A stretch of 64,000 bases of DNA from Monocercomonoides exilis PA203 (lineage: Eukaryota > Protista > Preaxostyla). The position numbers and the translations under genes were made by a program. The stretch is taken from positions 62,001 to 126,000 of the forward strand of contig LSRY02000033.1 in NCBI GenBank assembly GCA_001643675.2. Reading direction: 5' to 3'. Below the pieces are notes generated by a model that saw only the letters and a list, made by a program, of their open reading frames with translations, made no database searches and was not told where the DNA came from. Shown one piece after another: positions 1 to 28,764 of this stretch. Each line of letters starts with the position of its first letter. The first letter of the stretch is position 1.

Positions 1-3000
1 TTCTGTTTCTTGTTGAACTGCTTGATTTCCTTTATAATCAGCATTTGGAATGACAACTTCTGATGCTTTTTCTTCTGAATCAGTATTCATCCTTGAGTTC
101 CTCGTTGTGTCAGTTTTTCTCTTGCTTTTTGTACTTATTCGAATGGATTTCACTTTTTTGATTCTTAGAACTTTCTCTTCTCTGTCTTTTTGCTTGTTCT
201 CCATCGTCAAACGCTCAAGCTCAGTTTTTCTTTCTCTTTTTTGTATCTTCTTTGAAACCTCATTGTTATTCTCGCTGATGCCTTCTTGCTCTTCTTTGTC
301 TTCCTCTTCTTCTATTCTTCTTTCTAAATTTGATTCTTCTTTTTCTTTCCCTTCAAGTTCGTTAGTTTCTTCAAAATGGCTGAATTCTTCCATTTCACTT
401 GCATCTTTATCATTTGTTATTCCTCCGCTAAAATCTTCTTCCATTTGGATTTTTGTATCGTCTTTGTCCAAAGAATCTTCAGTCACATCTTCAAAACTTT
501 TCTCACATTCAGTGCTCAATTGTTCTTCCTCTGTCTTCTCTTCCAAGCTCTTCTCTTCTGATTCATCTGTTTTGATTTCATCATTCTCCAACTTTAGTTC
601 TTCTTCTTCTTCTTTGTTCTTTTCATCACTTTCATTATTTTCCTTTTTAACAATCTTCTCTTTATCTTTTTTAGTTATTTTAATGACTTTCGATCTGCTT
701 CCAACTTTTTTCTCAACTTTTAATTTTTTGGCTCCGTTTTTGTTTTCGTTTTCCACATTTGACTTGTTCTTGTCGCTTTCATCATTTCTGCACATTTCCT
801 TTGTATCATCATTTGAAAGTCCTGTGCCTTCCATCAATGCTGCATCCCTTTTCAGCAACAAAATCTCTTTCTTTAATCTCCTAATTTTTTGCTCTTTTTT
901 TGCATTTGTTTGCATTGTGCTTTCATTGCTTGTCTGCTCCTCAACCTTTTCTGGATGATCTGTTTGTTCTACTTTTCTATTGCTGATCTTAATTTTCAAA
1001 ATCGGAGTGACTTTCTTTTTCGGCTCTCCTCTTTCTTTCTTTTCTTCTTCTTTTGCTTCTTCACTTCCTCTTGTTGCAGGACTCCTCACATTTTTCGCTT
1101 TTGTATCATCTGAATAGATTTCTTTCTCTTTTTCTGCTTCCTTGTTTGGCTTCGCTTTCTTTGATTTGGAATCAACAAATGGCATTTTCAACTTGCTCAT
1201 CTCTTCTTTTGCAATGTCTGCTTCCTTCAAATCAGCATAAAGAGATCGTATTTCCTTTGATTGTCTTGTCAATTTGTTGACCATTTTTGTATTTTCATTG
1301 CTTAGCAAAATTCTTTCTTTTCGTATTTCTGTTGCATCATTCAAAACTTTGTGATTTCTAAGAGTCAAATGCTCTGTCTTTTCATCGTCATCACTTGATC
1401 CGTCTTCTTCCTCACTGTTTTCATTGCTTTGTGTTCTTAAACGCATCGTGAATCCTTTTTCATCCTTTGCTTCATCGGCTGCTTGTTGTTTTAGTACTTT
1501 TTCCAACTCCTTCATTTTCAGTGAAAGATTTCTTTTTCGTTTCACTTCTTCATTCCCTTCTGAAATCTTCTTCTTTTCTCCTCCTGCAGTATTTGCACTT
1601 CTCAAACGACTTGTAATTTGTCTGTCTTCAGATTCATTTGTCTCTTCATCTGATTCTTCTTCCTCCTCCTCTTCCTCTTCCTCTTCTTCTTCTTCTTCTT
1701 CCTCCTCTTCTTCCTCATCATCATCATCTTCTTCCTCTTCCTCTTCTTCTTCTTCTTCAGAATCATCACTTTTGTTTTCGCTTCGTAAATTCAGGCTTTT
1801 GGCTGTCATTCGAAGTTTAGCAACATTTCCTTCATTTTGCCCATTCTTTTTAACTCCTTCTTTATCTTTCTCATTCACTTTTCGAATGCTACTCAACCTC
1901 AATACGCTTCGATAATTTGGAGATTCAATGTTTTTCGCTTTGATTTCATTGTCTTTTTCTTCTTTATCACTTTTGTTGATTTCATTAGGCTTCCTTAATC
2001 TCAGCACAGAGCGTTTTATTTCAGTCTTTTCAGATTCATTTTTTGAGCTGTTTCCACTTTTAACTTTTTGAACTTCAGTCTTTTTATTCGATTGAGATTC
2101 ACTTTTCCCTCTCAAAGAAACTGTGCTTAGTTTTATTTCTTTGCCCTTTTGAGGAGAATTATTGCCACTTCTGGTCATCATAACCTTTTCTTTCTCTTTC
2201 ACATCCTCTTCATCAGAATTGTCTATTTGATTTCGCAACTTGTAAATAGTATTTCCTTTTTTAGCCTCTTTCTTTGCATCTCCTTCACTTGCAACTGAAT
2301 TCTGTTGATCATGACTTCTTGTGGAAGTTCTCATCAAAGTGACATGTTGTTCTTTCTGAGAAATTGAATGGATCGAATGTGCTTTTGACTTTTCGCTCTG
2401 ATTTGAAGCAATTTTCTTTTCAGCATTTCTCAAGTTCTCTTTTGTGATGATTTTCTTTATAACCTTCTTTTCTTCTTTTCCAATGGAACCTTTCTTTGTT
2501 TCTTCAGCTTCAGAATTGCTTTCTTTAAGTTGTTCTAATTCTTTGTCAGATTTTCTCGTTTCGTAGCTTTTCGTTTGTTTTTCTCTGTTATCCAAATCTT
2601 CTGCTTTTCTATTTTGAGTCTGCAGCTCTTTTCGAAGGGCGAACATTCTTCGTATTTTGGATTCGCTGTCAATCTCATCCAAATTCAATTCATTCTGTTT
2701 TTGCTCTCCTTTCTTTGTTCTTTTCATTGATTCGTTTCTGATCAATGTTTTGTTTCTCAGATTTCTTCGTGCAAGAAGTGGATGAACGCTCTTTTCTTTT
2801 CTTTTCTGTATTTCTTTTCTTCTTCTTCTCAGATGTTCCTTTATGCTTTCAATTTCTCTTTCTCTCTCTTTCTCCTTCTCCTTCTCCATCTCTCTTTGCT
2901 TTCGTCTTTCTAACTTCTCCTTCTTTTCCTTCTCATTCAGCAAACGTATTTTCAGTTTATTTCTCTTCCTTTCTTCATCTCTCAGTCTTTCCATCAGAAG

Positions 3001-6000
3001 CTTCCATTCCCTTTCAATCTTTCTCGATTCTGTTTCTGTATCCTTCTGCTTCTTTTTGATGTGCATTAATTTTGTGCTTGTCTTCAGCATCTTTTTGAGA
3101 GAATCGTTCTTCTTTTTCTTCTTCTTTTTTTCTGTCTCTTTTGCTCGAAGATCAATTTTGTGGAACTCCATCTTTTTCGGCCAGCCATTCAAAATCAGCG
3201 CTTTTGGCATCAAATTGATGGGCATTCCAATTCCATTCAAAATCAGCAGTTTATTCTGACCTTTGCCTTTCATCAGATTCTCAAATAGAGAAATAGAGTT
3301 CTTCTCTTTTTCTTTGCTTTCCTCATCCTCTTCTTCATCCTCACCATCATCGTCTTTATCTTCACTATCAACTTCGCTTTCTTCTTCTTCTCTTTCTTCG
3401 TCATCATCAGACGTTTCATCCTTCTCTTTGTCTGACTTTTCTTTGTCACTTAAAAGCCCAATTCTTCCATTTACTTCTTTCTTTTGTGCTATCAATCTGT
3501 TTCTGTTTGGAAGCAAACGTTTTCTCTCTTGTTTTTCTTTTGCTATTGTAATTCGTTCACTTGCAAGTTCTGTGTCTGCATTCATATTGTACCTTTCCTT
3601 TCCTTCAGCAAGCCCTCTGCTTTGAGTTATTTCGCTTTTATCTTCTGAGCTTTTCTTTTCTTTCCTCAGCTTCAGAGAAAGAATTGTCTTTCTTTTTTCT
3701 TTTCCCTTTGTCCTATCTTCTTCTTCTTCATCTTCTTTCTTCATCAGATAGGCACTTCCTCCTATCAATGCAACACTTTCATCTTCGTTCTTAATCTTTT
3801 GTCTTTCAGATTTCCTTTTCTCCACTTTTGAGTTTGCAGTTTCTGCTGTTTTCGATTTATTTTCGCTTTCTCTTTCATTCATCCTCTTTGCCAAAATCTC
3901 AAACAGAATCTTAAGCTCATTTTCCAATTCTTGTTCCATGCTGTTCTTATGTTTCTCTTTCCCGCTTTTCCTCTCATCTTCTTCTTTTATGCTCTTCTCA
4001 TACAAACTCTCCAGAAGATTCTTCACCTCAACTATTCTTCGCCTCATGCTCATGTTGCTGAATTCATTCGCATTTCTTCTGTTCAAATGCTCAGACACTC
4101 CTCCTTCTTCATCATTCGATTCTTCTTCTTCATTTGCATTTTTCGTTCCTGCTTTGTTTTTCCTGTTGTTTCTGCGCTCCTTCTCCTCTATCTCGTCTGT
4201 TTCCATTGCTTTGCTACCTTCACTGAGCGATCTCACTTCTTTCATCCATCTTCTCATCTTCTTATTGTCTCCTGCTGGACTTTCAGGTACATTTTTCTCG
4301 TTTCTCTTTCTTTCCATCTCTGATATTGCTTTTGATGGTGGCATCTTCTGTTTTGGTGATCCCCTCAAAAGCATCGGCTTAATCTGCTCTTTATTTCTCC
4401 TCGAAGCTGTTTGCGGGCTTTCGTTTTTAGTTCCAGTTGTGTTTTGTGGCTGGGCAAGACGAGGCAGCCTCAGTCTTATCAGATGTGTTGGGATGCGCAG
4501 AATGGAGCGATGTGCAGAAGAAGAAGGAGATTGATGCGGACTTCGTGTCTGAGCTGAACGAGACAGAGATGCATTCCCTCTCATCTGCTGTGGAGAAGGC
4601 AAAGCCCTCTTTTGTTTGGCAGATGCTAAAGCTGACTTGTCAGAAGAAGATATCTCATTCTTGTTTCTCTCATTTGATGAGGTTGAATAAGAGCGCAGAC
4701 GAGGCGATGATGATGGCATTGGCGAACGCTGAGGTCTGACTGATGCCATTTTTGATTCGTTGTTATCGATCATTCCATGTTCAATTTCCATTCCTCTTTC
4801 ATTCTCTTCTTTCATCCTTCGCGAAGACTGACGAGTGTTGCGTGAAGGAGATTGCGATGTAATGTCTGCCTCTAATGATTGCTGTGCAGATGAAGAAAGT
4901 CCTGTCTGTGAAAAACGAGGTGGTGAATGGTTGCTTGAAACAGAAGCAGCAGCAGAAAGAGAAGGAGGAGAAGGAGAAGAAGCAAAACGGAATCTCGATG
5001 TGGCTGGTGTGCTTGAAGGGGTGTCTCTTCCTTTGCGTATTGGTGGCGATAGAGTCATCAATTGATTTCGACTGAGTTTTGCTGAGAAGAGCGAAGATGC
5101 CTTCAACTGAGACTGGCGAAGGAGCTGTGAATAGGAAAGGCCAGGAGAAGAAGCAGGGCGAGCTGCTGGGTGAGTGCGTGAGGGTGTCAATGAAGGAGAG
5201 CGCAGATGGGGGCTTGTCTGAAGAAGACGAGCATTTACGTGCTGATTGAGACGAAAGCGTGGATGAGAAGGCAGAAGCAGCTGTTGAGGCGAACGAGAAG
5301 GAGAACGAAGGAATGTTGAAGAAATTGTTGGTGTTCGTTCTATTGTGCTACCACGTGTCTTCACATTGCTGCTTTTCAATCGACTCACCAAAGATGAAGA
5401 AGAATAAGAGGAAGAAGGCGAACGGAGCTTGATTCCTGAAACAGATGATGCATTTGTTGTCTTCCTCATGAGTCTAATTCTTCTTGCCTCAGCTGCAATG
5501 GATGAATCAATCGTTCCTGTTGATGAAGAAGAAGATGATGATGATGATGGCATTGAAGAAGACGTCAATGCAGTTGATTCAGAAGATGCTTTTGGTGTCT
5601 GTCTGATCAGTCCTCTCACTCGACGTGCAGCAGAAAGCAGTCGAACTGCGTGTTTTGTGGGTATTTCGATGTCATACGTGACTCTTCCTGGGAAGATGCG
5701 CTGCCTCACAACGATGTTGACTGAACTCGAAAGCAAATCGATTTCATTCATCAGAATTTCTCGTCTTGTTGTCTCGCGATCGAAGAGAAGAGTTTCTGCT
5801 GTCAGAAACGTGGGCCAGGGAGAAGAGGGCTTTTGCCTTTTGCTTCTGCTGGACTTGTAATGGAGTGATGAATAATGTGTGGAATATGATGGATGAGAGA
5901 AGGAGGAGGAGGATGATGATGAGATAAATTCTTTTGAAGATGAAGACTCATTCTTCATCAGTTGAAGCTTTTCTTCTTCTCTATTGTCACTCTGCTTTGA

Positions 6001-8946
6001 CTGCTGCTGTTGATGAAAAGTGAGTGAAGGTATATTTCTGAGTCTGTTTGCAACTAGAGGAGCAGCAGTGATGAACTGAGCAGAAGAAGCCATCAAAAAG
6101 CGAAGAGATGTTGTGAAGTTGTACAAAGAAGGAGAAAACGAGAAGTTGAATGAAGAAGCATTTCTGAAGAGTTTGTGTGGTTTGATCTCGAAAAGAGGAA
6201 CTTCTGAATTCTGAACGAAGAATTGATCATCATCCGAGAATGAGGTTTGATTGGTATCTGTTTCTGATTTGATGTCATTCAATTCTGAAGAAGAAGAAGA
6301 AGAAGAAGAAGAAGAGTTTGACTGATGAGTGTTTATTCTCTCACTTTCTGATTGAGGCGATTGACCGAAATAGATGGCTGGGACATTATTTGGAAGAGCA
6401 GATGCTTTCGTTGATTCTTTTTGTATGCGTGTTGAGATTGAAGATTTGAATGAGGTCACTTCAGAAGAAGAAGCAGAAGAGGAGGAGGAGGAGGAGGAGA
6501 AAGAGGAGGATGAAGATAAAGACAAAGAAGAAGGAAGAAGATTTGACCGAAGATTTGATGAATGGATGTTTGATTCAGAGAGATTTGGAGTTTCAAGTTT
6601 CACAGATGAAATAGTATCTGCAGTGTTTAAGGCTGAAATCTCATCAATTTCCATATGAGAAGCATCTTCATTCACTTTGCTTGATTCAATGGATGTATTT
6701 GTATGTGCATCAGAAAGTACATTTTGATTGTGCTGAGAAGAAGAAGAAGAAGAAGAAGATGATGATGATGATGATGATGAATCAACAGAAGAAATCAAAA
6801 CAGATTCTGTTTGTTGTTCGATTTTTGCTTCATCTTTCTTTTCATTCTCATTCTCATTCTCCCTTTCCATACTCAAAACTGACTCAGAATAATTCTCTTC
6901 GACTGATTTTCGCAGTGTGTCTGATGAATCAGACAGCAAATTTGCATCAAAAAAGAATATTTTTTGGTTTCTGTTGGCAAAACGAGAAGCAAAAAGAGGT
7001 GTTTGTGCAGTGAACAGGTCGAATGGAGTGAAGCTGAAGAGAAGAGCAGCCAATGGAATGGAAGAGCAGAAGGAGAAGAGAGAAGGTGCAATATCAACAG
7101 TTGATGAGGGAAGAGAAGAAGAAATTGAAGAAGAAGTTAATGTTGTTGATGATGATGATGATATTGGTGATGAAAGAGGAGGCATATGCATATCAGATGA
7201 ATGGATGGAGTGATCTTCTGGTTGATTCAAAGCAGAATAAGCAGAAGAATCATCAGAAACATACACAGAAGACATTTGTCTATCATTTGTTTGTGTTGAT
7301 GATGTTGATGACGATGTTGGTGAAGAATTCACTGATAAGTTAGCATTATTCAACTGCTTCATTGAAGAAAGGGATGAATCAGAAATCACTTCTCTTAAAC
7401 TGTTTTGTGAATAAAAGCGATGCTTTTTATTGAAACAGACAGGAGGAATGAGAGAAAGAAGAGTTGAACGCAGTTTCGAAGGCAAAGAAAGAGAGAAGTC
7501 AGTAGGAGGAGTGATGAAAGGAGCCAAATGAAGAGGATGGAGAGGAGAAAGAGAACGAGCTGGGATGATGCCAAATGAATCAGAAGAAGAGGAAGAGGAA
7601 GAGAAGGAAGAGAAGGAAGAGGAAGAAGAAGGAGAAGCAGAAGTTGATTGGCCATTGAGATTCAATGAAGCCAATGAATGTTGTGTTATTGCTAGTTCTT
7701 CTCCATCGTCTCTATCTGATTCTGTCTGTTTGTTTGTGTCATTCGCAATGAAAGTGTCTGAAAATGAAGGAGAAGCAGAAGAAGTCTGAAATACACTGGA
7801 ATTTGATGAAAGTGGTTGATTATGCTGCAGTGAAGGTGTATGAGCCATGATATTAGCAGCATTCACACCAGATTCAACAGAAAATGAGGGAGAAGAAGAA
7901 GAATTGATTTTGTCGAATGACTTAAACAAAACAGGAGAGAGAGTGAAGATTGGAGAGACGATTGGGAAGAGGAAGCGAATGTTCAATGGAAGAAATGGAA
8001 TTTCTTCTGATTTGAATTCGTCTTCTTCATCTTTTTGTGGATTCTTTTCATTCAACGACGATGAACGACGCTTAGATGTTCTCCAATAGCAAGAAGAGGA
8101 AGAGGAAGAAGGAGATAATTGAGAATAACCATTCAATGTATTTGTTTGTGGAGAAAGAGATAAGTTTCCTGAAGACAAAGTAGAAGAAGATGAAGCAGAA
8201 GAAGCAGCAGCAGCAGCTCTTCTTGTGGTGTAGATGCGACGTCTGGCAGATGAGAGATAAGAAGAGCGGACACGTTTGCCGTTTGTCAGATGCTTCATGG
8301 CAGAATTGCATCTGAGGAAGTATTGTGTGGATGATGGAAGGAAAGAAGAGGAGGAAGAAGAAGAAGATGATGATGATGATGATGGTGATAAGGTTGATGA
8401 TGTAGAAGAAGAGGTGATTGTGTTAGGAACAGAAGAGATGGATGGAGAAATAGTTGAATGTGATTTAGTTTTCTTTCCACTCATTTTTTTGGTTGACAAT
8501 TTCTTCTCATCAACATTTGCTTTATCTTCTTGTTTCTCTTTCTCTCCTTCCTTTTCAGTATTTTTGCTTCGATTCTTTAGTTTTGTTGTCTTCTTCTTTG
8601 AATGCGATTGTTTTGGTTTTTCTTTTGTTTGGGTTGAAGTTTGTGGTTCTTTTGACAAGTTGTAAATTGAAGGAGGAGGAAGAGGGAAAGGAAATTGAAG
8701 AGGAAGAGGAAGAGAAGAAGACGCAGAAAGAGGAGAAGAAGAAGAAGAAGCAGGAGAAAGAGAAGAAGCAAGAGAAGGAGATTTAAGAGAAGCAGATTTC
8801 AGAGGAGGAGTAAAGGAAGAAGACAAATAATTGCTTGGAGGGGCATTTTGAGTGAAGATGGGGAACAAAGCAGAATTTGGAGAGATCTGACTGTTTGTGA
8901 GAGAGGAAAGAGGAATTGCTGAATGAGATGGAGAAGAAGAGGAAGG

Positions 8947-8982
<36 letters not shown>

Positions 8983-11900
8983 GGAAGAGGAAGAGGAAGA
9001 GGAAGAGGAAGAGGAAGAGGAAGAAAAAGTATTAGTAGTGGAAGAAGATGGTGAAAAATTGGTAGAAGAAGAAGAAGAAAGAGGAGGAAGAGGAGAAGCG
9101 GAAGAAGAAGAAGGTGGTGATAATGCAACTTGAACAACAACAGACATTGAATTAGAACTTTTTGAAGAAGTTGAAGAAGAAGAAGGAGGAGGAAGAGGAG
9201 GAGGAGAAGGAGATGATGATGATGATGATGACGACGACGACGAAATAGTTGATAAAGTTGAAGAAATTGATGAAGCAGATGAAGAAGCAGATGAAGAAGC
9301 AGATGAAGAAGGAGAAGGAGGAAGAGGAGGAGAAGGAAAAGGAGGAATAGAAAGGGTGGTGAATGTGATGTTAGTGAGTGGAGCGATGGCTGGTGGAGGA
9401 AGAAGCTGAGAGGAAGAAGAAATCGAAAGAGAAGAACGTTTTTGGAGAGAATGAGCAGAGGAAGATGTGTTCAGAGAAAGCGGTTGGAAAGGCAAAGATC
9501 TGTTTTGAATTTGTTCTGAAGAAGATTTCTGTTTCTGCTGCTGTTGATGTTGCTGGGATGAGTCAGCTAACAATGGAGAAGAGGAAGAGAGGGAGAGAGG
9601 GAGGGGCAATGAAGAAGGAGGAGGAGGAGGAAGGGGTGGAGGGAGGAGAGGGGGAAGAGGAGGGGGAGAAGGAGAAGGAGAAGAGAGAGAGGAAGGAGAA
9701 GAAGAAGATTGTGGAGGAGAAGGAGAAGAAGGAGAAAGTTGATGAGGAGAAAGAGAAGAAGAAGAAGAAGAAGAAGAAGAAGAAGAAAGAGAAGGAGACA
9801 ATTTATGGAGCTTCTGATATTGCTGTATTTGTTTCATAAGAAGATATTGCTGCTGAAGCTGAATGGTTAGTTGTTTGCGCTTCGAAAGGCGGTTGTATTT
9901 CTGAGGTGTCTTAAACTTGAAAGAGAAGAGGGAAGAAGGAAGAGAAGGAGCAGAAGGAGAAGAAGAAGAAGAAACATTCGGAAAAGGAGGAAGAGGAAGA
10001 CTTGTTTCATTTTGAAATGGAGCAGAAAATTGAATGTTTGGCAGATTTGGTTGAGAAGAGGAAGAGGAAGAGGAGGAAGATGATGATGGAGATGATGATG
10101 AAGATGAAGCAAAAGATAGAGAAGAAAGAGAAGATGGAGAAGAAGGTGGAAGAGGAGAAGATGTTGAGGAAGGGGAATGAACAAGAGAAGGAGGCAAAGA
10201 AGGAGAAGATGATGAAATAGAAGATGTTGAAATAGAAGAAGAAGAGGAAGAGGTTGGAACTTTCAACGGTGAAAAAGCCAGCCCAGATGTGTTGAGATTA
10301 GAATGAGAGGGAGGAAGAGAAGGAAGATGATTTGTGTGCAAAGGAAGAGGAAGCATAGAAAGAGGAAGAGAAGGAGAAGAGACAGAAATAAGATTGGCAG
10401 AAGAAGGAGAAGAGTATGAGGATGATGGAGTAGAAGATGGAGATAACAAAAGGGAAGAAGGAGAAGAGGAAGAAGAGGACAAAGATAAAGACATAGACAA
10501 AGAAGAAGGAGAAGGAGAAGGAGAAGTGAAAGGATAAGGAAAAGGAGATGGAGATGGCGAAGAAGATGTGCTTGTTTGTTTGTTTGGCGAAGAAGCAGAC
10601 AATTTTTCTGAGTCTTTTTTGATGAACAGACTTGGCTGAAGAGGATTCTGAGGAAAAAGAACTTTTGAAATCGAATGGACAGCAGGAGAAGGAGAAAGAA
10701 CAGGAGAAGACTTGAAAGTGATTGAAGAAGGAGGAGGCAGAGAAGAAGGGAGAGAAAGAGAAGAAGAAGATGAGGAGGAAGAAGAAGAAGAAGAGGAGGA
10801 GGAGGAGGAGGAGGATGAGGATGAGGATGAGGATGAGGATGAGGATGAGGATGAGGATGATGATGATGAGGAGGTTGAAGAGGGTGAAAGGGAAGGGGAA
10901 GAAAAAGAAGGAGGAGAAGTGTTATTAGACAAAGAAGAAGACTGAGAAGGAGTCAATTGAACATCCATTGAATTATTCTGAAGTATTTTTTTGTTTCTTT
11001 TCAATTTTGCCTGTTTGACTGAATTTGGAGAATTTGGATCAGAAATGGGCTCTGAAGGAGAAGAAGAAGGAGAATGAGAAGAAGAAGGAGAAAGTGTTGA
11101 CAATTGAGATATCTGCACTAATGAAGCAGAGGAAGGGAAAGGAAGAGAAGTTATAGTGGAAGAAGGTGGGAGAGGAAGAGGAATTTGTGAAGGAGGTGGC
11201 AAAGGAGGAGATGTAACAGGAACAGAATGAAGGAGAGAATAAGGCAAATACGAAGAGGAGAAAGAAGAAGAACGGCTTGTGCGTGTTTGTTTGATGGATG
11301 AAATGGCTGGGGCAAATTGAGGAGATGAAGGAGATTTTGGTGATGAAGAAAGAAGAGGAGTAGGAGAAAGAGAAAGAGAAGGAGAGGAAGAGTTTGGCGT
11401 GTGCATGATGGATGAAGTTGATTGAGAAGGTGAAAGAGAAGATGAAGAAGATGAAGAAGATGGAGATGAAGATGAAGATGAAGATGAAGATGAAGCAAAC
11501 AAAGAGAAAGGAGGAGAAGAAGAAGATGAACGAGACAGAACAGCTGTGGTATTATTAACAGCAGGGAGCAGCGTTCTGTCTCTTCTGAGTGGAATGAATG
11601 AAGGAGGAAACTGTGGTGACTGTGGAGTGTCTGAAGGGGTGTCTGAAGGGGTGGGTGTGGATGATGGAGTGGATGATGGAGTGGGTGTGTGTGTCTGTTC
11701 AGGTGTTGTTGCGTGTGACGATGTTAATGTTGATGTCAATGTATTTGTGGATGTGTTTGTGGATGTGGATGTGGTTGTGTTATTTTCCTCCTGTTTTTCT
11801 GTGGTGTCATTCATTCCAGAGGCATTTTCAGATAAAGAAGGAGAAGAAGAAGAAGAAGAAAGAGAAAGAGGCAATTTAAACACGGAATTGGATTGAGATG

Positions 11901-14900
11901 AAGAAATGGAGAAAGTGTCTGATTCTTTTGGTTTCTTTTCATTCTCCTTCATTTCATCTTCTTTGCTCATTGAAATGTTGCTGCTCTGAGATTTATCCGT
12001 TTTCACTCTTATTTCAATTGATGGAAACGGATTTGTTGTGCTTGATGTGTTCAAATTCAACGATGAAATCACCTCAGATGGCACAGGAATGACAATATTT
12101 GACTTTGTTGCTGCTTTTTCAGAAGTGTGTTTTACTAACATTTTCAATGCATTTGCATTCGGAGAAATAGAAATCGGAGAATTAGATGATTTTATTGATT
12201 CAACAGCAGTCATAGCCGTTGGGTTAGGCATCTTCTGTGCTTGGTTGATTGATTTGAGTGGGTCATTTGATAATGTTGTTGTGTTTGTACTCAAAATTGG
12301 CTTGGGAAAAGCAGAAACAGAAGAAATTGACGGAGAAATAGAAGAAGAAAGAGAAGGAGAAATAGCAGAAATGGGAGAAAGGGAAGGAGGGAAAGAAGAC
12401 TGTTCTTCATTCAAAAGAGGGCGTGATGCAGCCAAAGGAGCAAACGAGTCTTTTAAATTCTCTCTTTCCTTTGTTGGTGGAGTTGATGGAATGTTGAATG
12501 GATTGAGTGTCAGAGGAACAGATATGCTGAAAGGAATAAGCTTTGCATTCGAACTCGAAAATCCTGTTTTCACTTCATTTGAAGAAGGAGAAATACTTCT
12601 GATGCTTCTGTTATTATAATTGTTCGTGTTGTTCATGCTGTTGTTGAAGCTTTTGAGCGGTTGAGATTGTGTTTCTGTTCCATTCAATGGAAGAGAAGAA
12701 GAAGAAGAAGAAGAAGGAAGATATGAATTGCTGCTTGGCTGAGTGGAAGCGGCTAAAACATTCGGGAAATGAAGAGAATTGTTCAAAAGAGGCAGAGATT
12801 GAGGCATGTTAGTGCTCTTCACTAACACATTTTTGACTTCTTGTTCTTCCGATGAAATGTTGTTTCCTTGTTTGTTTGTCTGTACAACTTTTTCTTCTTC
12901 TTCTTCTTTTATTTTATCTTTGCCTTCCTCTTCATCATCATCATTTTCTTCTTCTTCGTTCTTCTCATCCAATCTCAAACGACTTGTTCTTTGTGGTTTA
13001 ACCCTTTTCTTTCTTTGTGTTTGAATTGAATCATTGGCAGCTGAAGATGATTGGTTCAGTTCTTCAGGAAGTTGGATTGGTGCCTTAGCAGAAGAAGAAG
13101 ACGACGACGATATCAACAATGAAGTCTCATTCATCATTCTTGTTCTGCTTCTTGTTAGTCGCAGATTTGATGTTGGCGAAGAAGATGGTTCGATCAACAT
13201 CACATCTTGTGCATTGCCATCTCTCTGATTAAATTTGTCTTCCTTTTCCATTTCTCTTCTTTCTTTCTCATTTTCATTTTCTTCTTCTTCTTTTTCCATA
13301 GAAGCAGAGCATTCTTCAACATCATTGCCAGAATCTGCTTTGATTTGTTGTGAATTCTCGGCAGGTTGTTCTTCATCCATTGAAGATGTCTCAATCACCA
13401 TTTTGTTATTCTCTTCTCCTTCTGATTGAACTGTCATTGGAGAAGATGTTGATTTAAGCTGTTGTATTGCCTTGTTCTCATCCAATGAAGAATTCTCTTC
13501 TTTTATTTCCTTCATTCGATTGATCATTTCTTCATTCTTTTTCTCAGAAACCTTCTCAGATCCATTCGAAATGGTCAATTTTGATACAAAACTGTCGATT
13601 TCATTGTTGATATTTTGCATTTCTTCTCTTATCATCTGCCTCCATTTCGGTTTCAGCTCATCTTCTTCCTTCATCTTCTCTTGTGTATCTTCTCTTTCCT
13701 CTTTCTCAATCTCTGCAATTGTCGAGTTCAATGCAGCTAATTCATTGTTCCCTTTGTTCTTAATCTTCTTCTTCTTCTTCGCTGTCGTTTTCTCCCTCTC
13801 ACTTTCCAGTTGCATTTCTGCTTCCTTCAGCTCAATCGCTTTCTGAACTTCTTTTCGCCTTATGTTCTCAATCTCTTGTTCCATCACTCTGAACAGCTCT
13901 TCTTCAAAAAGTGAGTCATTCTTCATTTCTCCTTCTCTTCCCATCCCTTTCACCTTATTTGCACACTCTTCATCCATCTTCATCCTCTTCGTTTCTCCTG
14001 TCCTCTTCCTCATCCTCATCTCCATCTCCATCCCCATTCCCATAGCCATTTGTTCTCTCTCTTTCTTCTCCACACAATTCATCAGCATCCTCCTCTGTAC
14101 TATTTCTGCTGCTGCTGCACATGCATCTAACAGAGCATCACAATGCATCACAAATATCGTGTCCATTTTACTTGCATCTTCAAACGGCTCAAACAAATCC
14201 ACAGCAAAGGAAGCATGGTCTTCTAATGCTGACTTCACCACTGATGGCACATTGATCATCTCCTCCATAATCTTCTCTGCTTTCTCACTGTCACTTTTGG
14301 CACTGCTGCTTGTGGTGGTGGAGGTGGTGGTGCTGTTGCTGATGTCACTACTGTCATCACTGATGCTGCTATTGCTGCTGAGAATGCTGCTGTCACTCTC
14401 TTCATTTTTCTCTCTCTTCTCTCTCTTTTCTCTCTTTTCGCTTCTGTCCTTTTTCTCTCTTTTGTTCTTCTCTTCTCTTCTTTTCTTTTCCTTCCGCTGA
14501 GCTTTGGCTTTGGCTTTGGCCTTCTTCTCCATCTCTCTTTTGGATGGCTCAACATTCTCATACGACGAGGATGAAAGAGAGCTCAACTCCTCTTGTTTTG
14601 AAGGAGTGTCAGAAGAAGGTTTCGTTTCAGGCATTTCATCTGGCTCATCTTTTCCTTCCGTTCCAACATCTCCTCTCAATCTCATTGTTCCTGCCAACTT
14701 CTTCTTTTTCTTCCTTCTTTCTGATCTCGATCTGAGAGCATTGCGCGCCTTGTGCATGTTTTCTCTCCGAATCTCTCTCAATCTTTGGCGACTTGTCAAA
14801 TCTGCTTCTGCTTCTGCTTCTGCTTCTGTTTGTGGAAGAGATGAATTAGAATTCTTGTTTGGCTCAATGTCCATCAATTCTGAATTCTCCTCTTTGATTG

Positions 14901-17900
14901 CATTGCCTTCATCTCTTTCCTCTTCATCTTCGCTCCTTCCTCTTTTCTTTTCTTTGCCTGTTTGCTTGTCTCTTGTAACATATCTTTTTCTGCTTTCTTC
15001 TTCTTTCTTTCTTCTCAATCCCATTTTCAGCTGGCGTTGTTCTTTCTTCTGCTTCATCAAATTTTTCAAAATTTCTTTTTCAATCATTTCATTCTTTTGT
15101 GCTTTTATCGATTTCTTCTTCTCCATCTTTCTTTTCTTCTCTCCCATTGCTTCAATGCTGATATCTGATATTCTGTTGTTGCTTTCATTAAAACTGCTCA
15201 TGATTCCCTTTCTGCGCCTTTCTTCACCTTCTTCTTCTCCTTCTTCTCTTTGTTCATTTTCGTCATTGTCTTCTTCATTGTCATCGTCTTCATCATCTTC
15301 CTCGTCACCCTCTTCCAAATCTATTTCCATTTTTCTGTTGTATTTGCCTCTTCCACCTCTTCTGCCATTTCTCTTCCTTCCTCCCCTTCCAATCCTCATC
15401 CATCTCCCAAATGTTCCTCCTCCTTTTTTCTCCACAGCATTTTCTTCTTCCCTCTCACTTTCTCTTTTGTCATCTGCCATCTCTTCTTTCTCTTCCTCCA
15501 ATTTCTTTTCCCCTTCCTTTCTTGTTTCAATCTTTCCATTCTTCTCATTCTCTTCTTCAGCCACTTTCTTCCATGTTGACAGAATTATCACTGCCAATGA
15601 AACAAATGCCTCTTTGCTGCAGCGTTGCAACATGTTGAATGAGAACAGCGATCTCATCAGCTTTGACACTCGATCAAGGCGGATGATGTCTTGTTCCGTC
15701 AGAGCAGTGATTGAAGGAGAGAATGGAGAAAGAGAAGAAAGAGAAGAGGGAGAAAGGGAAGAGGAGAAAGAAGATGAAGGATACAGAGAAAATGATGATG
15801 ATGAAGTTAATAGAGAAGAAGAAGAAGAAGAAGCATCAATATTATGAATAGCCTCATTTGTCTGTGCTGAAGAAAGAGGAGGCGAATGGAATGGCACATC
15901 TGATGGCTGGTTGAACGAAGTATCAGAAAAGTCAGAGACAATTGTGAATGGAAAAGAAGATGATGGTCTGGAGTCTGAAAACGAATCAAGAGAAGAAGAA
16001 GAAGAAGCTGATGAGGAGGAAGATGATAACGAATAGGATGTTGATGGTTCTTGTAATAATGAAGAGGAAGATGAAGAAGCAGAAGATGAAGATGGATAAA
16101 TAAATAAAGAAGAAGAAGATGATGGTGACATTCCATATACATTCGTTCCATCTTCTTCCATTTCTCTTCTCTTTCCTTCCTCCTTCACCTCATGAAATCC
16201 CAATCCAACATTATCCTTCAACCCTCTTTCCATTTCCATATTCATTTCCTTTTTCTCCTCTTTCTCCTTCTCCTTCTCCTTCTCCTTCCCTCTCTTCTCT
16301 GCTTCTGTTGAATAAGCCATCATATCCTCGTGGCAGAAGAATTGCACCAGTCTCATTGTCAATTTACCTCCAAAAGCCAATCTGTTCAACCTCTGCTCTT
16401 CCAAATCAGACACAAAAGATGTCTTCTTTCTGTTCAAAATGAGAGACACACGCTGTTTGTCGAAGGATGTCTGAGGAGACGGAGAAGATGGGAATGAGAT
16501 GAGCTCATCTGCAATTGGGCCTATTTCTGGAAGGGAAGAGGAGGCAGGAGAAGATAAGTTCAAAGAAGGAGAAGATGAAGGAGAAGGAGAAGGAGAAGGA
16601 GAAATAAATGAATAAGAAGAAGAGGAGGAGGAGGAAAAAGATGAAGAAGATGATGAAGATGATGAAGAAGAACTAATCGTTCCTTGCATTGGTGTAACTG
16701 AAGAACTGGAAGATAAGAAAGGCGATTCAGAAGAAGAAGGCGGAAGAGAAGGAGAAGTCTGTGCTGAAGCAGAAAGTGGCTGAGAAAGAGAGAAAGGCGA
16801 AGAAGAGCTTGAAGGCATCATTGGTGTTGCATTCACAGAAGAATTGGATGAAGAGAATCCAGTTGTTGGAGGAGAAGGAGAAGGAGATGGAGAGGAAGAG
16901 GAAGATGGAGAAGGAGATGGTTCGATTAGATTGGAGGAAGAGTCAGAAGGGATACTCCAATCAGAAGGAGATGAAGAAGGTGAAGGTGAAGGAGAAGGAG
17001 AAGGAGAAGTATTTTTAGTATGAAGGGGCAATGAAAATGAAGAGGAAGAAGAAGAAGAAGATGATGATGATGATGATTCAAAATTATTTGTTGATTGGAT
17101 GGGTGCTGCTAAATCCAATGAAGATATTTCATCTTTCACAAGTGAAGAAGAAAGTTGTTGTTTGTCAAATTCAGAAAAATCAGATGAAAAAGAAGAGGAA
17201 GAGGAAGAGGAGGAGGAGAAAAGAGAAGAAGATGATGATGATGAATCAGAAGAATTGAGTGTTGGTGTGAAGGCATCAAGGGTCGATTGAAAATCAGAAA
17301 CAATAAACAAACCCGTCTTCTTTTCTTCAACTTCCTTTTTGTGTTCTGTTTGTCGTTTGCTTTCTTCTTCTTCTTCCTCTTTCTCTTCTTCAACTGCTTT
17401 GTCTTCTTCCTCTTTCTCGTCTATCTTTCCTAAGCTCATTCTCTCTTTCACTTCTTCTTTCTGAGCACTTATTTTTTCTTTCTTCTTATTTGTGGAATCT
17501 TTCATTGAATTCATCCCAACCTTCATTCTCTTCCTTTTGGCAGCTGATGCAAATGAAGTTGCTGAAGAAGAAGAAGAAGAAGAAGAAGACGATTTTCTAA
17601 GTGATGCTTCTTTTGCCTTTGCGCTGGATGACATCAGCATCGACGCAAGTGAATGAGGAGGAAATCTTTCAGCAATAGAAGACTCTGTTTTGTCTTTTCC
17701 TCTTTCTTTCTCTTTCTCTTTCTCCTTTTCTTTCTCATTTTCTTCCTCCAACTCTTCAAACATGTCTTCATCATCATCATCATCATCAACTTCTATCTCT
17801 TCAATCTCTTTTATCTCTTTTATTTCTTTTATTTCAACCAGCTTCGTCATCTGCTTAGGTCTCAGTGTCTTAAACTCTCCTAATGCCTCATTCAGCACAA

Positions 17901-18264
17901 AAAGAGGATGAATGCTGAAGATGGACTTGTCTTCTTCTGCAAATCGGATCTGTTTCTGTTTGATGTGTTCATCTTGTTTGGTTGATGATGAAGGAGAAGA
18001 AGAGGAGGAGGAGGAGGAGGAGGAGGAAATGGAAGAGAAGGAGGAAGATGAGGAAGACGAAGATGAAAAAGAATTTGTTGATTGTGCATTTGGTGTTCCA
18101 ATTGATCCCTGTGTTTTTCTTATTCCATCTTGTTTGATAGAAGAATGATCAACTTCATAATTAGACCTTTTCTGGTTGTCCTTCACGAGATGCGGAGGAA
18201 TCACTTCCAAATCAACAATTTCTCTTTCTTTCTCCTTCTCTTTCTCTTTCTCCTTTTCTCTTTC

Positions 18265-18296
<32 letters not shown>

Positions 18297-21200: not shown

Positions 21201-21808
21201 TAGCAGCGTCTGTGCTGAACACAATGCCATGTGCAATGTCTGCTGAATGGCGGAAGAAGAACGTCAAAAGAGGCATCGAAACACTCGGAACACTCAATTT
21301 GTGATTGGGATGGGCAGATGAAGATGATAATGATGAAGATGATAACAATAATTGAAGATCGAGTTTCATCTCTTCCTCTTTCATCTTCATATTCTTTTCC
21401 TTTTCTCTTTCATCAACATCTCCATTTGCATCCAACTTATCCACATACACACACTTCTGCTGCTGGCACTCCCACATTCCTGTTCTTCTCTTCTCATCAT
21501 CATCACTTCCACAGCATGCAACAGCCATTGCATTCATCTGCTGCATCATTGGCTGAATGCACCCGTGAAGGAAGTGACGAGAGCTGAGTGAGAATGTCTG
21601 CACATCTGAATGGGCAGACAAGAGAGGCAGGACAACATCAGTGGAGATGAGAAGAGAGGCAAAGGAAGGAGGATCGAGAGAGGAGAGAAGGCGAGTCACA
21701 GCAGAGGAGAAGTGTGCTGGCAAAGAAGCACCTGTGCGTGAATGGCTGCGATTGGGGGGTGGGAATGAAGGGGAGGCTGATGGTGTGGATGAGGTAACTG
21801 ATGATGAA

Positions 21809-21843
<35 letters not shown>

Positions 21844-24800
21844 AGAAGATATTTTTGAAGGAGAAGAATTGAGCTGGTTGAGTGAAAGTGTTCGGAATGG
21901 GATGATTGCGGGAGAGTATGAAAGAGCTGATGCTTTTGTGGGATCAGGATTTCTGTATATCTTGTCAAATCCTTTGTTCTTGTTCGGAGAATAACGCCAC
22001 GGAGAATTAAACGCAAAAAGTGGAGAGAAAAAATGTGCTGGAGATGATTTCATCTTTTTGTTCGATGTTAATTTGTTTATTCGTTGAGATGGCAAGTTTG
22101 GAGCAGAAGAGAAGTCATCAATGAAAAGAGGGACACTCGATGACCTCAGAGCATATGTCATCTCCTGCTGCAGAAGTGGCTTTGGATTGGATTTTTTGTT
22201 GAATTTGTTCTTTTGAAGGGTTTGAGTGTTGTTGAATGAAGATGTTGAACTTTCTGGTTGTTGAGATTCTGTTGAAGAAGATGTGATGAAGAAGGAAGAA
22301 GAAGAAGAAGATGATGATGATGATGATGATGATGGATTTGAAGATTGAACAGAAGAGGTGTCTGAAATCAAATGAAGAGTGGGATTGATTTCTTCGACAT
22401 TTGTGGGTGTTGATGTTGATGGTGATTGTGATGGTGATGGTGATGTTGATGAGTGTGTGGTTGATTGGTCAAAAGAAAGAATGCTAGCTGAATTACAATC
22501 AGAGTGTTGGTGATGCGTCTTGTGGTGCGAAAAAAGAGAAGTCGAAGAAATGTCTGATGAAAATGAAGATGATGAAAAAAGAGATGAAGATGTTGGCGTG
22601 TGATGCATGCTCAATGATGGAATCGGAGATGAAGATAAGGATGAAGAGGCAACTGTCGAAGCATCAACATTTTCTGTGGAATTTCTTTGGAATTTCGGAG
22701 AAATTGAAGATTTCTCCGGAATTGTACTTGTGCTAACCTCTTCATCTTTTTCCATCTGAGAAGAAATTTCTTGAATTGTGTTAGCTTCAAATGAAGTTCC
22801 TCCATTTTCTGAAATAGATTGAGTTTCTAATTGAGAATTTGCTGTCTTTTCTTCTTCCATTGAGGATGAGTCTGCTGATGTTGCTGTTGATGTTGATGAA
22901 GCCAAATCAACAGAAGTGCCAGTTGAAGGCTCTATCTCCATTGAATCCATTTCATTCTCTAATGTTTGCAAACTTTCGCCTTCTGATTGTTTTGAATGAG
23001 GAGCATCTGAATTAGGCTCATCAGATGTCTTTGATGATTCATCTGTGATTGATGAATGTTTATCATTCAATGACATAGTTGTATTGTCAGATCCATTCGT
23101 GTTTTGAGAAGAATCATGTGGTTCTTTTTCATTCTTCTCAACTTCGGCTGAAGAAGAAGATGTCAATGAAATTGAAGGGAATAATGTTGATGTAACGTCT
23201 TCATCAGTCACTGGATGATTCAATTGCTGTTGTTCTTGTTTCAATACTGTCTGTACTTGTGTTTGTGTTTGTGTTGTGTGAGAGTGTGTTGTTCGTGGCG
23301 GAGGCAGCGAAAACAAAGAAATCGTCTTAGTCTCCTCTGATGTCACTTTCAATTCATTTCCTTTTCCTGCCTCTCTTTCTCTCTCAGCATCTTTCTCTTT
23401 CTCCCCTCCTTTCTCTTTTCCTTTCTCCTTTCCTTGTTCCTTCTCATCTTCCTTCTCACTTGCAGGCAGAATCAGCCCACCCAGCTGTTCCACACAGAAA
23501 GGACACACCCAAAGCTCTCTCGCAATCTCTTCTCTCATCTTCTGCCGCTCCACAAAGCTGTATGAATCATTCGCTGACCCTAACACAGATGGCTGGGCGA
23601 CAAAACCTGAATATGTTGAAGATGATAAAGATGATGATGATGATGATGAAAATAAACTGGATTGGTGAGATTTCATCATCGTTGATGATGAGTTTTCCTT
23701 CCCTTTGCCTTTTTTACCACTTTTGCGAAGATTGTACACAACTCCTTTGCCTTTCCCTCTTCCTTTGCTATTCCCATTCTTCTGCTCCTCTTTCTCTTTC
23801 TCTTTCTTCTCTTCCTCTTCATCCTCACCTCCTCCTCTACCTTCTTCTTCCTCCTCTTCTTTCTTTCCTTCTCCATTCTTCTCCATTCCTTCTCCAGCTG
23901 TCTTCTTCTTCCCTTTCTCATCTGGTGCTTCATCTAACAGCATCTCCAATGGTACAAAAAAAGGCAGAGTGGACACACAACATGGATGATACCAGCGTCC
24001 ACAATGAGAACAGTTCAGAAAGCGCTCAGAAGAGACAGCAGAAGCAATGGCTGAGGAAGAAGAAGTAGAAGAAGAAAAGGCAAGTGCAGAGGAAGAAGGG
24101 AGGAAGGAAGGCCGATCAGCAGATGAAGAAGAGAAAGGAACGAGGAAATCACCATTTGGAAGAAGGGATGAGTTTTGGAAAGAAGAGGAAGGAGAAGAAG
24201 AGGAAGACGAGAAAGGAAGGGGAGAAAAAGAAGGATGATTTGAAGAACAAGAAGATGATGAAGAAGATGATGACGAGCAAACGGCAGCAGCAACAGAATC
24301 CCTGTGAAGAAATGAAAAAGGGCTGACTTGTTCGCTTGGAGCAAACAGAGAAGAAGAATCATAAGGTCTTTTGACGCGATGGCAGAGTGAGCAAATGTGG
24401 AGCATCTCAAACTGCTTGCGGCAGTTCAGAGAGCAGAAAAAGAGTTCCTTTGGATCAGACAGATGGGAAGAGGATGAAGTGGATGAGGATGAAGAAGACG
24501 TAGAAGGAGGAGAAGAAGGAGAAGAAGATAAAGAAGAATTTGAAGCATCGTCGTTTGCAATCATAAACCGTTCAGTCATTTTTTGTACATTTTCTTCTGT
24601 CTTCTTCATCAGCTGCTTGCATTTCTCGCATCCGCAGAAGCCAAACAGCCTTCTTCTCTTCCTCAGAATGAGCTCTCTGTCCTTCTCAGCTGCTGCTCTC
24701 TTCACTTTTTCGATGTTCTTTCTCATCAGATCCTGTCTGGCTGCACACTCAATACAATACACTGAATTACATTGAGCACACACACGCGACCCAACCAGCG

Positions 24801-26777
24801 TGAGGTTTGGAGGGAAAGAGGCATCTGGGGCGAGGTCAGCAAGCAACTGTGAATGGAGTGGGAGAGGTGGAGTGGTTGGCTGGGCGATGATGGAGGAAGG
24901 CGTGGAGAGGCTCTGCATCTTCTCGTGCTCGTCTTTAAAGTACTCGATGAGATCGCTCTTGACTGACGAGTTTTTGAAGAGGAACTTCTCCAGTTTGTGG
25001 AGGAGGGTGTCTTTTGTGGCTGTGGGTGCAAAAAGAGGGGTAGACGAAGATGAGGAAGAGTCGGAAGAAGGGGAAGAGGAAGAAGGGGAAGAGGAAGAAG
25101 GGGAAGATGATGATGTAGGTTTTAAAGAAGATGATGATGAAGTTGAAGTTGAGGAAGAGGAAGAAGATGGAAATGAGTTCTGAGAAGATGTATTGGCAGC
25201 AGTTGTGATAGATGCAACACCAGCTAAAGATGAAGAAGATGATGTTTTTGCAGCTGGCGAATACAAACGACTTTTCGGTCTGCGCATTGCAAATTGACTG
25301 CTCTTTAAGCTTCTGGTACTTTTGTGCTGATCTCTTAAAAGTGATAAAACCTCTCTTTTCTCAATGTGAATTTCTCGTTTCTTTTCTTTTCCTTTCTTCT
25401 CTTCTTTTTCCTCTTTTTCCTCTTTTTCTTCATTTCCATTGGAAATCTTTTCTTTCGTATCTTCAAAGATTCCAACGCTCTCTCTGTTAATCTTTTCATC
25501 TTCAACAACTTTGGCAATTGTTTGTGCCTTGTTTGTTTCTCCAATATATCCATATCCACAATTCAATGGAAATTCCTCTTTCTGTTCTTCCACTGCATTT
25601 CCTTGTATCAATTGTATTTCCATCAATCCTTCCTTTTTCTCTTCTTCTTTATTTTCCCCGCTTTCTTCTTTTTTTGCATTTATCTGTTCAACTTCTCTCT
25701 TTCCTTTCTTCTTCTCGCATTCATCAACAAACCCCATCAGCTGCTTTGCCAGCGATTCAATGCTGCCAAACGGCTGTCTGCTTTCTGATGCCACAATGCG
25801 CATCGCCCGCTCTGTCGTCAATGAACAATCAGCCCCGCTGCAGTGGCATCCGCAGGTGGAGCATGTGAATCCCCCAATCCCATACTCGTTCCGTGCAAAA
25901 AACCGTTTCAGCGGTTCTGTATGCTTCGCATACATATACGCATTAATATCCGCAAGTGATTTCAAGCCAGCAAACCAAGGAGAAATGGATTGTGTGGAAG
26001 GATATAGCAAGAAGAAAAGCTCTAAGAATAAATCCTGCTCTCCTGAGGTCCATTTTTTACTACTATGTAGCGATAGCTCTGGAGCAACTGATATCATTTT
26101 TTTCTTGTGTTTGTTTTCCAGTGGCCTTTGTACTTCTAAAGATATTTTCCGCTTTGCTGTTGGAAATGATCGCGGGCTCACTTGAATAATTCTTTTTCTT
26201 TTCAAAATAAGTTGAGGTAAAAATGGCGCTAATGTAGATCTTCTTGGATGAAATTTAAGTAATCCCTCTGAATATTGCTTTCGAAATACTTCGCTTTCAT
26301 CATCATTTGGTCTTGATCCATTCTTAATTATTGAAAATGGAGGAATTGGAATTGTTTGATTCTGGGCATTTAAAAAAGTAACATGCTCTCCATTCTGTGA
26401 TGGCGTTGATGATATCTGCAGTCTCTCACGAAATACAATTTCTTTTGTTCGAATCTGATTTCGAAGTTCAGAATTATAAAAAAATTCTTGATTTATCAGT
26501 TTCTAATGATAAACAAATAAAAGATTTTACGGATTCAGTTAAATAAAAAATAAGTAATAGATTAAGCGAATAAATTAAAGTCAATAAAGATGAAAACCTG
26601 ATCTTCTTCTTGGTTTGAATGATAGTTCAGTGTTCGTTCAATTGCTTTGTTTTGCTTTCTTTGTTTTAAAAAACGTTCCCAATCACCATCTTCGTTCGGA
26701 ATGTATTTTGTTTCTCCTGAACTTGCGTTCATAAGAGAAATAAACAAATCCCTTTTAATAGATGTGATCTTACCCAT
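1..26777 (-). CDS. Giant (>=8,894 aa, 3'-truncated by the window edge) low-complexity putative chromatin protein with an N-terminal SANT/Myb-like motif and split PHD/Cys zinc fingers; exon 1 26777-26598, intron 26597-26503, exon 2 26502-<1
   Basis: ATG at 26777; donor CAG|GTTTTC after ...NQEEDQ; phase-0 acceptor ATCATTAG|AAA. The minus frame complementary to + triplets starting at positions 1 mod 3 had no stop in the many lines I translated from 26502 to 1. The ORF track lists no minus ORF in that frame, as expected for a frame that never closes. Motifs: KKWTSGEQDLFLELFFLLYPSTQSISPWFAGLKSLADINAYMYAK; FTCSTCGCHC; VCAQCNSVYCIEC; FCGCEKC; FFCSLNCRKQFEMLHICSLC; NCSHCGRWYHPCC; WVCPFC. Confidence 0.9.
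1654..1758 (-). repeat. Coding trinucleotide tract: 35 consecutive Glu/Asp codons in the giant CDS
   Basis: Run of TTC/CTC/ATC triplets on + in the frame of the giant minus ORF. Confidence 0.9.
10759..10872 (-). repeat. Coding microsatellite (GAA/GAG/GAGGAT)n: 38 consecutive Ser codons in the giant CDS
   Basis: AGA/GGA/TGA triplets on + read TCT/TCC/TCA on -. One of many such tracts in this gene. Confidence 0.9.

Positions 26778-28711: not shown

Positions 28712-28764
<53 letters not shown>
28712..28764. repeat. Poly(T) homopolymer (~53 nt)
   Basis: Seen directly; followed by a degenerate T-rich tail. Confidence 0.95.

Follow-up and report, generated by a model that had tools for sequence, protein, structure and literature searches.

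The question raised by this locus is whether one minus-strand frame, open over more than 26 kb of the genome of Monocercomonoides exilis, encodes one giant protein or several. The window analyzed was a stretch of 64,000 nt from the strain PA203 (contig LSRY02000033.1, positions 62,001 to 126,000). A preliminary description, made from partial translation, had proposed that the frame 26502..1 is stop-free, and translation of the window bore this out over its whole length: there were 0 stops in 8,834 codons, against about 480 expected from local composition and a minimum of 429 among 200 local shuffles. The length of at least 8,894 aa given in that description is incorrect, as the window part comprises 8,834 codons. 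The remaining five frames over the same interval contained 208–629 stops each, present in every 2-kb bin. The short ORFs listed there had rightly been regarded as shadows: those of at least 140 aa are F/L/S-rich and lie antisense or off-frame. The giant ORF was indeed absent from the ORF track, but the edge of the window alone made it seem hidden, since the track omits ORFs running off the source end.

Beyond the window edge, in the adjacent contig sequence (L003, G000:C29:52001-62000), the frame continued open for a further 1,431 nt (477 codons) and closed with a TGA at G000:C29:60567-60569, giving 9,311 codons from stop to stop; this extension also contained a conserved C-terminal module. 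AATAAA/AAATAA motifs, reported as poly(A) motifs for M. exilis (PMC8767320), were found within 30 nt 3′ of the terminal TGA. GC3 was the lowest of the codon positions in 9 of the 10 3-kb bins, the exception being 24–27 kb, where GC2 was lower, and the tandem repeats of the giant exon keep the frame, as previously stated, with periods nearly all multiples of 3. The frame includes 4,348 one-step nonsense sites, from which 1% neutral divergence would yield about 14 stops (P of no stop = 5e-7). Such openness far exceeds chance, and codon structure is present throughout the frame.

The TAG bounding the giant frame holds the acceptor AG of a predicted intron, and the single exon proposed earlier gives way to a predicted gene with two exons, the first of 60 codons and the terminal one of 27.9 kb, separated by an intron of 95 nt (Table 1). 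The predicted exon 1 has an in-frame stop upstream and a reading frame unlike that of the giant frame; the two join, in phase 0, only once the intron is removed. The donors of the predicted introns of the giant gene and its paralogue, GTTTTC and GTTTGA, do not fit GTATG, which has been reported as the consensus in the oxymonad Streblomastix (PMC1501061), and are atypical for oxymonad introns. BLASTP gave no alignment between the exon-1 peptides of the two genes. Exon 1 and the intron are thus a putative model read from the DNA. Based on the joined exons, the predicted protein was computed to have 9,371 aa and a mass of ~1.03 MDa.

Table 1. Features of the giant gene (positions in the window unless L003 is given).
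Feature	Position	Strand	Remarks
Predicted exon 1	26598..26777	-	ATG 26777-26775; 60 codons; ends ...GAT CAG, then GT donor
Predicted intron	26503..26597	-	95 nt, GT..AG, 20% GC
Giant exon 2, window part	1..26502	-	Codons 1-8834 of the 9,311-codon frame; rest left of window
N-terminal conserved domain, aa 151-231	25810..26052	-	Putative SANT/Myb-like helices, then CxxCxCxC cluster
Cys cluster, aa 564-640	24583..24813	-	CxxCx4CxxC ... CxCxxC; conserved in paralogue
FCS-like motif and putative split PHD finger	23485..24450	-	CSLC aa 704-707, core CSHCGRWYHPCC aa 831-842, CPFC aa 1000-1003
Three internal islands, aa 2853-2882, 3582-3641, 4083-4198	13909..17946	-	Collinear with paralogue; E 0.036, 8.7, 7e-4
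Ser/Pro-rich block, aa ~4550-7250	4753..12855	-	Up to 45% Ser, 16% Pro per 500 aa
Glu/Lys/Arg-rich block, aa ~7400-8834	1..4305	-	43-52% charged; a hydrophobic-[LM]R[LSTN] motif recurs
Conserved C-terminal module, aa 9198-9266	L003:8705-8911, left of window	-	Paralogue match E 2e-11; helical

A paralogue with 4,784 open codons was found in the same genome (C57:460234-474585). Its layout equals that of the giant gene: a small exon (45 codons), an intron at the matching codon position (102 nt, GT..TAG) and a giant exon. Homology of the giant exons starts at residue 1, directly after the acceptor (E 0.002), and six HSPs with E<1 follow one order in both proteins, including the N-terminal (E 3e-10) and C-terminal (E 2e-11) islands. 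On comparison of the two sequences, the collinearity of the islands in one frame, from residue 1 to the C-terminal helical module, indicates that this is probably one gene and not several. The alternative, in which the interval holds several adjacent genes or large frame-preserving introns and no 9,000-aa protein is made, draws on the many in-frame ATGs and on 43 internal AATAAA/AAATAA hexamers on the sense strand. Depletion of these hexamers was examined as a sign of selection on full-length mRNA, and there was none (50.7 ± 7.7 in codon shuffles), so shorter transcripts are possible. However, stops and AT-rich spacers would have to lie between separate genes, and within the giant exon there is no 75-nt window below 20% GC; intergenic DNA in the window has about 22% GC. 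An in-frame stop and frame-preserving introns had been named at the outset as possible counter-evidence. No such stop occurs in the frame 26502..1, and the scan of the giant exon for AT-rich (GC ≤25%) GT..AG intron-like segments of 3n length returned nothing but one 45-nt K-rich stretch. Given also that the paralogue keeps the island order within one open frame, we consider the division into several genes decidedly unlikely.

Concerning the N-terminal part, the domain at aa 151-231 shares 37% identity with aa 147-230 of the paralogue, a match that was also recovered in a search of genomes. The protein-language-model neighbours of aa 135-260 were Myb/SANT clusters (0.90, 175 shared features), and the AF2 model, built on a two-sequence alignment, has three helices at pLDDT 44. 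Pfam gave no SANT/Myb match at E≤1, and the PDB profile search returned no relevant match. The SANT-like domain suggested by these models is only a lead. Word-index homologue searches with aa 135-1050 were blank, both within the 8,834-aa query and as a 1,100-aa query. The Cys cluster at aa 564-640 matched aa 397-419 of the paralogue (E 0.015), while the PDB offered only a weak, non-significant FYVE-like match (E 0.16). The FCS-like match was also non-significant.

A putative PHD-finger core is supported by the comparison of motifs and profiles. Taking C-x2-C-x4-5-H-x2-C as the definition of the core, we found the Cys4-His-Cys3 ligand order with an aromatic residue before the His in both paralogues. 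The ligand groups are split by low-complexity loops of ~123 and ~157 aa, and the paralogue equivalent, CAVC ... CTCCGRTFHFGC ... CPLC, shares the Cys/His pattern and likewise has long loops. In a phmmer search against the PDB, the core matched mostly PHD-finger or related chromatin proteins, the best being DPF2 (E 7.8e-5). The match to Pfam PF00628 had E 0.016 and covered only model positions 10-29 of 47; the paralogue had no Pfam PHD match. A compact PHD finger of ~50-60 aa above the Pfam gathering threshold is not what is seen here, given the score of 15.7 bits (cut-off 24) and the length of the loops.

The giant protein is mostly low-complexity, as the preliminary description held; it has 22% Ser, and about one third of it is Glu/Lys-rich. 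There are 65 Ser runs of at least 5 residues, the longest of 38; they mix TCT, TCA and TCC codons, only 10 of the 65 use a single codon, and the longest run of identical codons is 11. The high Ser content and the S/P/T blocks on a 2.7-kb scale resemble mucin domains and would suit a mucin-like glycoprotein rich in Ser, Thr and Pro, either secreted or on the cell surface, instead of a nuclear protein. A signal peptide or membrane anchor, by which such glycoproteins were to be recognized, was not found: no 19-aa window has a mean Kyte-Doolittle value above 1.8, and the maximum 12-aa hydropathy of exon 1 is 0.81. In addition, the N-terminus carries zinc fingers of intracellular type, including the putative PHD core, a third or so of the protein is Glu/Lys-rich, and the paralogue has an AT-hook-like KKRGRPPRK. 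A mucin-like glycoprotein is therefore highly improbable. The nuclear location proposed earlier is plausible only, being consistent with the PHD core, the SANT-like lead, 14 basic clusters and the lack of a signal peptide or TM segment.

It is also conceivable that the low-complexity bulk is itself functional and directly selected, as a phospho-regulated condensate scaffold or an ER/K-type spacer of defined length. The low complexity falls into distinct S/P-rich and E/K-rich blocks, both paralogues retain equal kinds of blocks, and the distal third has more copies of the hydrophobic-[LM]R[LSTN] motif than expected (17, where shuffled aa 7000-9100 gave 4.7 ± 2.0). However, the linkers of the two paralogues are unalignable and differ 2-3 fold in length, and the neighbouring unrelated ORFs also contain 12-21% Ser, so that the Ser-rich expansion looks genome-wide. 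We regard direct selection on the bulk as unlikely.

Based on the above results, we suggest that the locus is probably a genuine nuclear protein-coding gene of M. exilis, for a protein of ~9,371 aa with inflated linkers, whose frame is held by the C-terminal module. The N-terminal ~1,000 aa would comprise a helical domain resembling SANT together with several motifs for zinc binding, the split PHD core among them; the ~8,000 residues between the ends would be Ser/Pro-rich and Glu/Lys-rich low complexity with few conserved islands. The frame would remain open since the C-terminal module must be translated, and upstream nonsense or frameshift mutations would then be removed by selection. Triplet repeat growth in the linkers would be tolerated and may have inflated an originally much smaller protein, as the half-size sister gene suggests; the lack of introns may likewise come from this inflation. 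The strong selection invoked earlier thus stands in part. The nonsense sites and the conserved modules of the paralogue indicate a real, selectively maintained exon, but selection over the whole length is unneeded, because selection on the C-terminal module combined with tolerated triplet-only repeat growth suffices to account for an intronless exon. It is possible, though tentative, that the protein is a chromatin-associated scaffold reading histone tails or DNA via its N-terminus. A more far-reaching proposal is rather doubtful: a ~1-MDa chromatin-associated protein whose zinc fingers (PHD, FCS-/FYVE-like) still fold despite disordered loops of 120-160 aa between ligands, whose 27.9-kb exon stays open only because a small C-terminal module is essential, and whose family has no detectable relatives outside the M. 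exilis genome.

The 9,311-aa frame was searched in pieces (window and L003). Pfam assigned no family at E≤0.01 to any part of the 9,311 aa, the C-terminal 477 aa among them, and nothing above threshold to eight sub-regions and the paralogue. The exhaustive search with the C-terminal 192 aa returned an 84-aa fragment of the same gene and one other protein, of tandem reverse-transcriptase fragments, which is spurious. The PDB profile search with the C-terminal module gave no relatives, and the AF2 models of both conserved end domains were of low confidence (pLDDT 42-44, two-sequence alignments). Neither the full-length protein nor a homologue outside the M. exilis genome was found in the protein collections searched, and the two genes make up a putative two-member family, so far known from this genome alone. 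Giant genes of low complexity are already a recognized phenomenon, and the M. exilis genome is already published and annotated; neither the literature searched nor the first of the supplementary files published with the genome described the giant gene.

If the model is true, the coding exon, at 27.9 kb, would rank with the longest of any intron-containing eukaryote, and the gene would be an example from nature of repeats inflating a reading frame to an extreme. The locus would show to what extent a protein can grow by in-frame expansion of low-complexity sequence: a sister gene of half the size has the same islands, and what appears to keep 28 kb open is a tiny module at the C-terminus. It may serve to test whether megadalton disordered proteins are made in a mitochondrion-lacking protist, whether zinc fingers with long inter-ligand loops can still function, and whether such genes systematically escape gene finders and ORF tracks or are broken up by them.

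Among known systems, titin is similar in its very large size only. The giant protein is about one third as long, so the term "titin-scale" used earlier is too strong; Pfam found no Ig, FN3 or kinase domain of the titin/obscurin type, and there is no PEVK-type repeat, only short-period triplet repeats. A protein of the Trithorax/MLL (KMT2) type is not indicated either, as SET, post-SET and FYRN/FYRC were not found among Pfam families at E≤0.01 in the 9,311 aa. With the ELM2-SANT/Myb-like co-repressors (MIER, CoREST, egl-27), aa 135-260 may share the language-model neighbourhood, W-x2-E-x2-F and three predicted helices, but profile searches of Pfam and the PDB gave no match, ELM2 is lacking, and the model confidence is low. 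The PHD-finger readers (DPF2/DPF3, KAT6A, BPTF, KMT2C/D) are alike in the core C-x2-C-x4-H-x2-C and the WYH signature, present in both paralogues. Their loops are roughly 10-30 aa, in contrast to those of the giant protein, whose metal binding and folding are putative and in which Pfam detected no partner domain such as SET, bromo or MYST. AHNAK, SRRM2 and KMT2D are giant proteins, disordered for the most part, and in each case a single very large exon supplies most of the coding sequence. The giant gene has no sequence relationship to them, its exon is longer and its composition is Ser/Pro and Glu/Lys; AHNAK has repeat units of ~128 aa, whereas only short-period repeats occur here. What it has in common with all three is a near-intronless, very long coding exon of mostly low complexity with small structured ends.

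Translation of the reverse complement of window positions 1-26502 gave 8,834 residues and 0 stops, as the preliminary description had claimed, and the remaining five frames of the interval contained 208-629 stops, with every 2-kb bin hit. Purine- or pyrimidine-rich tracts are excluded as the source of the open frame, since local base composition predicts ~480 stops per frame and block shuffles (n=200) never gave fewer than 429. Leftward of the window, the frame runs for another 477 codons, through a conserved C-terminal module, to a TGA, making 9,311 codons from stop to stop. Within 30 nt 3′ of the TGA lies TAATAATAAATAATAAATAAAA, which holds both poly(A) motifs reported for M. exilis, AAUAAA and AAAUAA (PMC8767320). 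The short ORFs listed over the interval are all F/L/S-rich shadows, as proposed; the giant frame was indeed missing from the ORF track, but merely because the track omits ORFs running off the source.

Coordinates of the giant gene, its paralogue and neighbouring features
Feature	Position	Strand	Description
Predicted exon 1	window 26598-26777	-	60 codons, ATG at 26777, stops upstream of ATG
Predicted intron	window 26503-26597	-	95 nt, 20% GC
Giant exon	window 26502 to C29:60567-60569 (TGA; contig LSRY02000033.1)	-	
N-terminal island	aa 151-231	-	E 3e-10 against paralogue
C-terminal module	aa 9198-9266	-	
Paralogue	C57:460234-474585	-	open frame of 4,784 codons
T homopolymer-like tract	window 28712-28814		~103 nt, 83% matches; in 22%-GC intergenic DNA upstream of giant gene
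Ser-rich ORF	window 34081-37908	+	1,275 codons, 21% Ser
ORF series	window 45881-52766	+	GGAI/FxxN-type polymorphic-membrane-protein-like (Pmp-like) repeats, TM segment, kinase-like C-terminus
RING-H2-like ORF	window 54440-55345	-	301 aa; CGHMVHRRC...CPVC, poly-Ser tract, hydrophobic C-terminus

The TAG bounding the frame (26505-26503) sits in ...TTATCATTAG|AAA, and a candidate donor, CAG|GTTTTC, was found 95 nt upstream of it, directly after a 60-codon ORF. This ORF and the giant exon do not share a frame, and a phase-0 join is obtained only by removing the 95-nt segment. The donor GTTTTC is atypical against the GTATG consensus of the oxymonad Streblomastix (PMC1501061). On these sequence features we infer exon 1, and the predicted product would comprise 9,371 aa (~1.03 MDa, computed).

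Within the giant exon, no 75-nt window falls below 20% GC, and the only GT..AG segment of 3n length with GC <=25% is 45 nt long and encodes VIKITKKDKEKIVKK. In nine of ten 3-kb bins, GC is lowest at the third codon position (GC3); in the remaining one, 24-27 kb, GC2 is lower. Introns of M. exilis average 119 nt and 27.6% GC, with a mean of 1.95 per 2.73-kb gene (PMC8767320); at that density, applied uniformly, 28 kb would hold ~20, against the one here, at the very 5′ end. The same scarcity and 5′ position hold for the paralogue. The proposal of a single exon without introns thus holds for the giant exon itself, but not upstream, where the intron and exon 1 are predicted. No depletion of internal poly(A)-type hexamers was seen, so shorter mRNAs are possible.

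A search of the genome (82,301,135 bases, 101 contigs; published PA203 ONT assembly, ~82.3 Mb, 101 contigs, PMC8767320) with the C-terminal 192 aa found a single other locus, on contig C57, and the N-terminal domain matched the same locus and no other. All six HSPs with E<1 occur in identical order in both proteins: the N-terminal island, the C-terminal island (FFALRELRILIRST ... IALHR..VWK, E 2e-11) and four more with E between 7e-4 and 0.12. Between islands, the linkers cannot be aligned, and their lengths differ 2-3 fold. At its 5′ end, the paralogue has a 45-codon ATG exon and a 102-nt GT..TAG intron directly before its giant exon. The two giant exons can be aligned over their first 36 residues, beginning at residue 1 (E 0.002); BLASTP gave no alignment between the exon-1 peptides. 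Judged by sequence, we regard the giant open frame as one gene, not several.

Ser, Glu and Lys make up 22%, 10% and 8.5% of the giant protein. Its N-terminal ~1,000 aa contain Cys residues, after which come blocks of Ser/Pro/Thr (Ser reaching 45%) and of Glu/Lys/Arg (charged residues reaching 52%), and the C-terminus is of higher complexity. The protein has 14 basic clusters; neither a TM segment nor a signal peptide was found. In window 1-5500 (aa ~7000-9100), hydrophobic-[LM]R[LSTN] occurs 17 times vs 4.7 +/- 2.0 expected, often followed by an acidic/Ser stretch, and may be a repeated linear motif.

Pfam gave no significant match for either paralogue, the sole trace being half a PHD finger (E 0.016, under threshold). 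Searched with phmmer against PDB, this 36-aa core retrieved mostly PHD-finger and related chromatin proteins, the best being DPF2 (E 7.8e-5), then DPF3, KAT6A, KMT2D and BPTF. CxxC pairs flank the core ~123 and ~157 aa off in both paralogues, which share this split Zn-finger pattern and the C-terminal module. Language-model neighbours of aa 135-260 were Myb/SANT clusters (0.90), with no profile support from Pfam or a PDB profile search; AF2 models of both end domains were unreliable, and the giant protein showed neither a SET domain nor any further feature of MLL. For its function our best guess, held at somewhat less than even confidence, is a chromatin-associated scaffold; pointing to this are the PHD core, the SANT lead and the basic clusters, as well as a KKRGRPPRK resembling an AT-hook, located around aa 2328 of the paralogue.

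Among 1.84 billion representative proteins, the C-terminal module had no relatives beyond a fragment of its own locus (84 aa on a Logan contig, 100% identical to the genome). The 1,370-aa library protein P0002 (E 2.5e-25) was a false positive due to repetition only, being 17 tandem copies of a reverse-transcriptase fragment (..SAYADDVLL..). The two genes form an orphan family, the searched genome collection being without relatives of the M. exilis genome.

In the giant exon, 4,348 single-nucleotide changes would each create a stop. Neutral divergence would be expected to produce ~7 stops at 0.5% and ~14.5 at 1%, the probability of none at 1% being 5e-7 with indels uncounted. Repeat match levels are 67-95% (TRF), no more than 10 of 65 Ser runs are built from one codon alone, and identical-codon stretches reach 11 at most; the repeats have existed long enough to diverge. 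Since no such stop is present although the repeats have diverged, nonsense and frameshift changes have been removed. The strong in-frame selection proposed earlier is to this extent supported, but the need to translate the conserved C-terminal module would be its simplest sufficient cause; the linkers may also be selected directly, but this is not required. Ser-rich expansion looks genome-wide, as unrelated neighbouring ORFs also contain 12-21% Ser.

The first in-frame residues of the Ser-rich ORF include ...LQLDPSERLTPHQASFHPFL, which by eye resembles the last part of a protein-kinase domain and so points to kinase exons upstream and to a long tail rich in Ser; with Pfam this ORF had no match. 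The kinase-like C-terminus of the ORF series matched PK_Tyr_Ser-Thr just below the cut-off (E 8e-5, Pfam). M. exilis has a large protein-tyrosine-kinase (PTK) family (PMC8767320), of which this gene is probably a member.

The giant locus is a genuine gene, very large and mostly of low complexity. The description of its product as titin-scale was right as to very large size but overstated, the protein being about one third of titin. Giant disordered proteins encoded by a single huge exon are a known class, which this gene joins.
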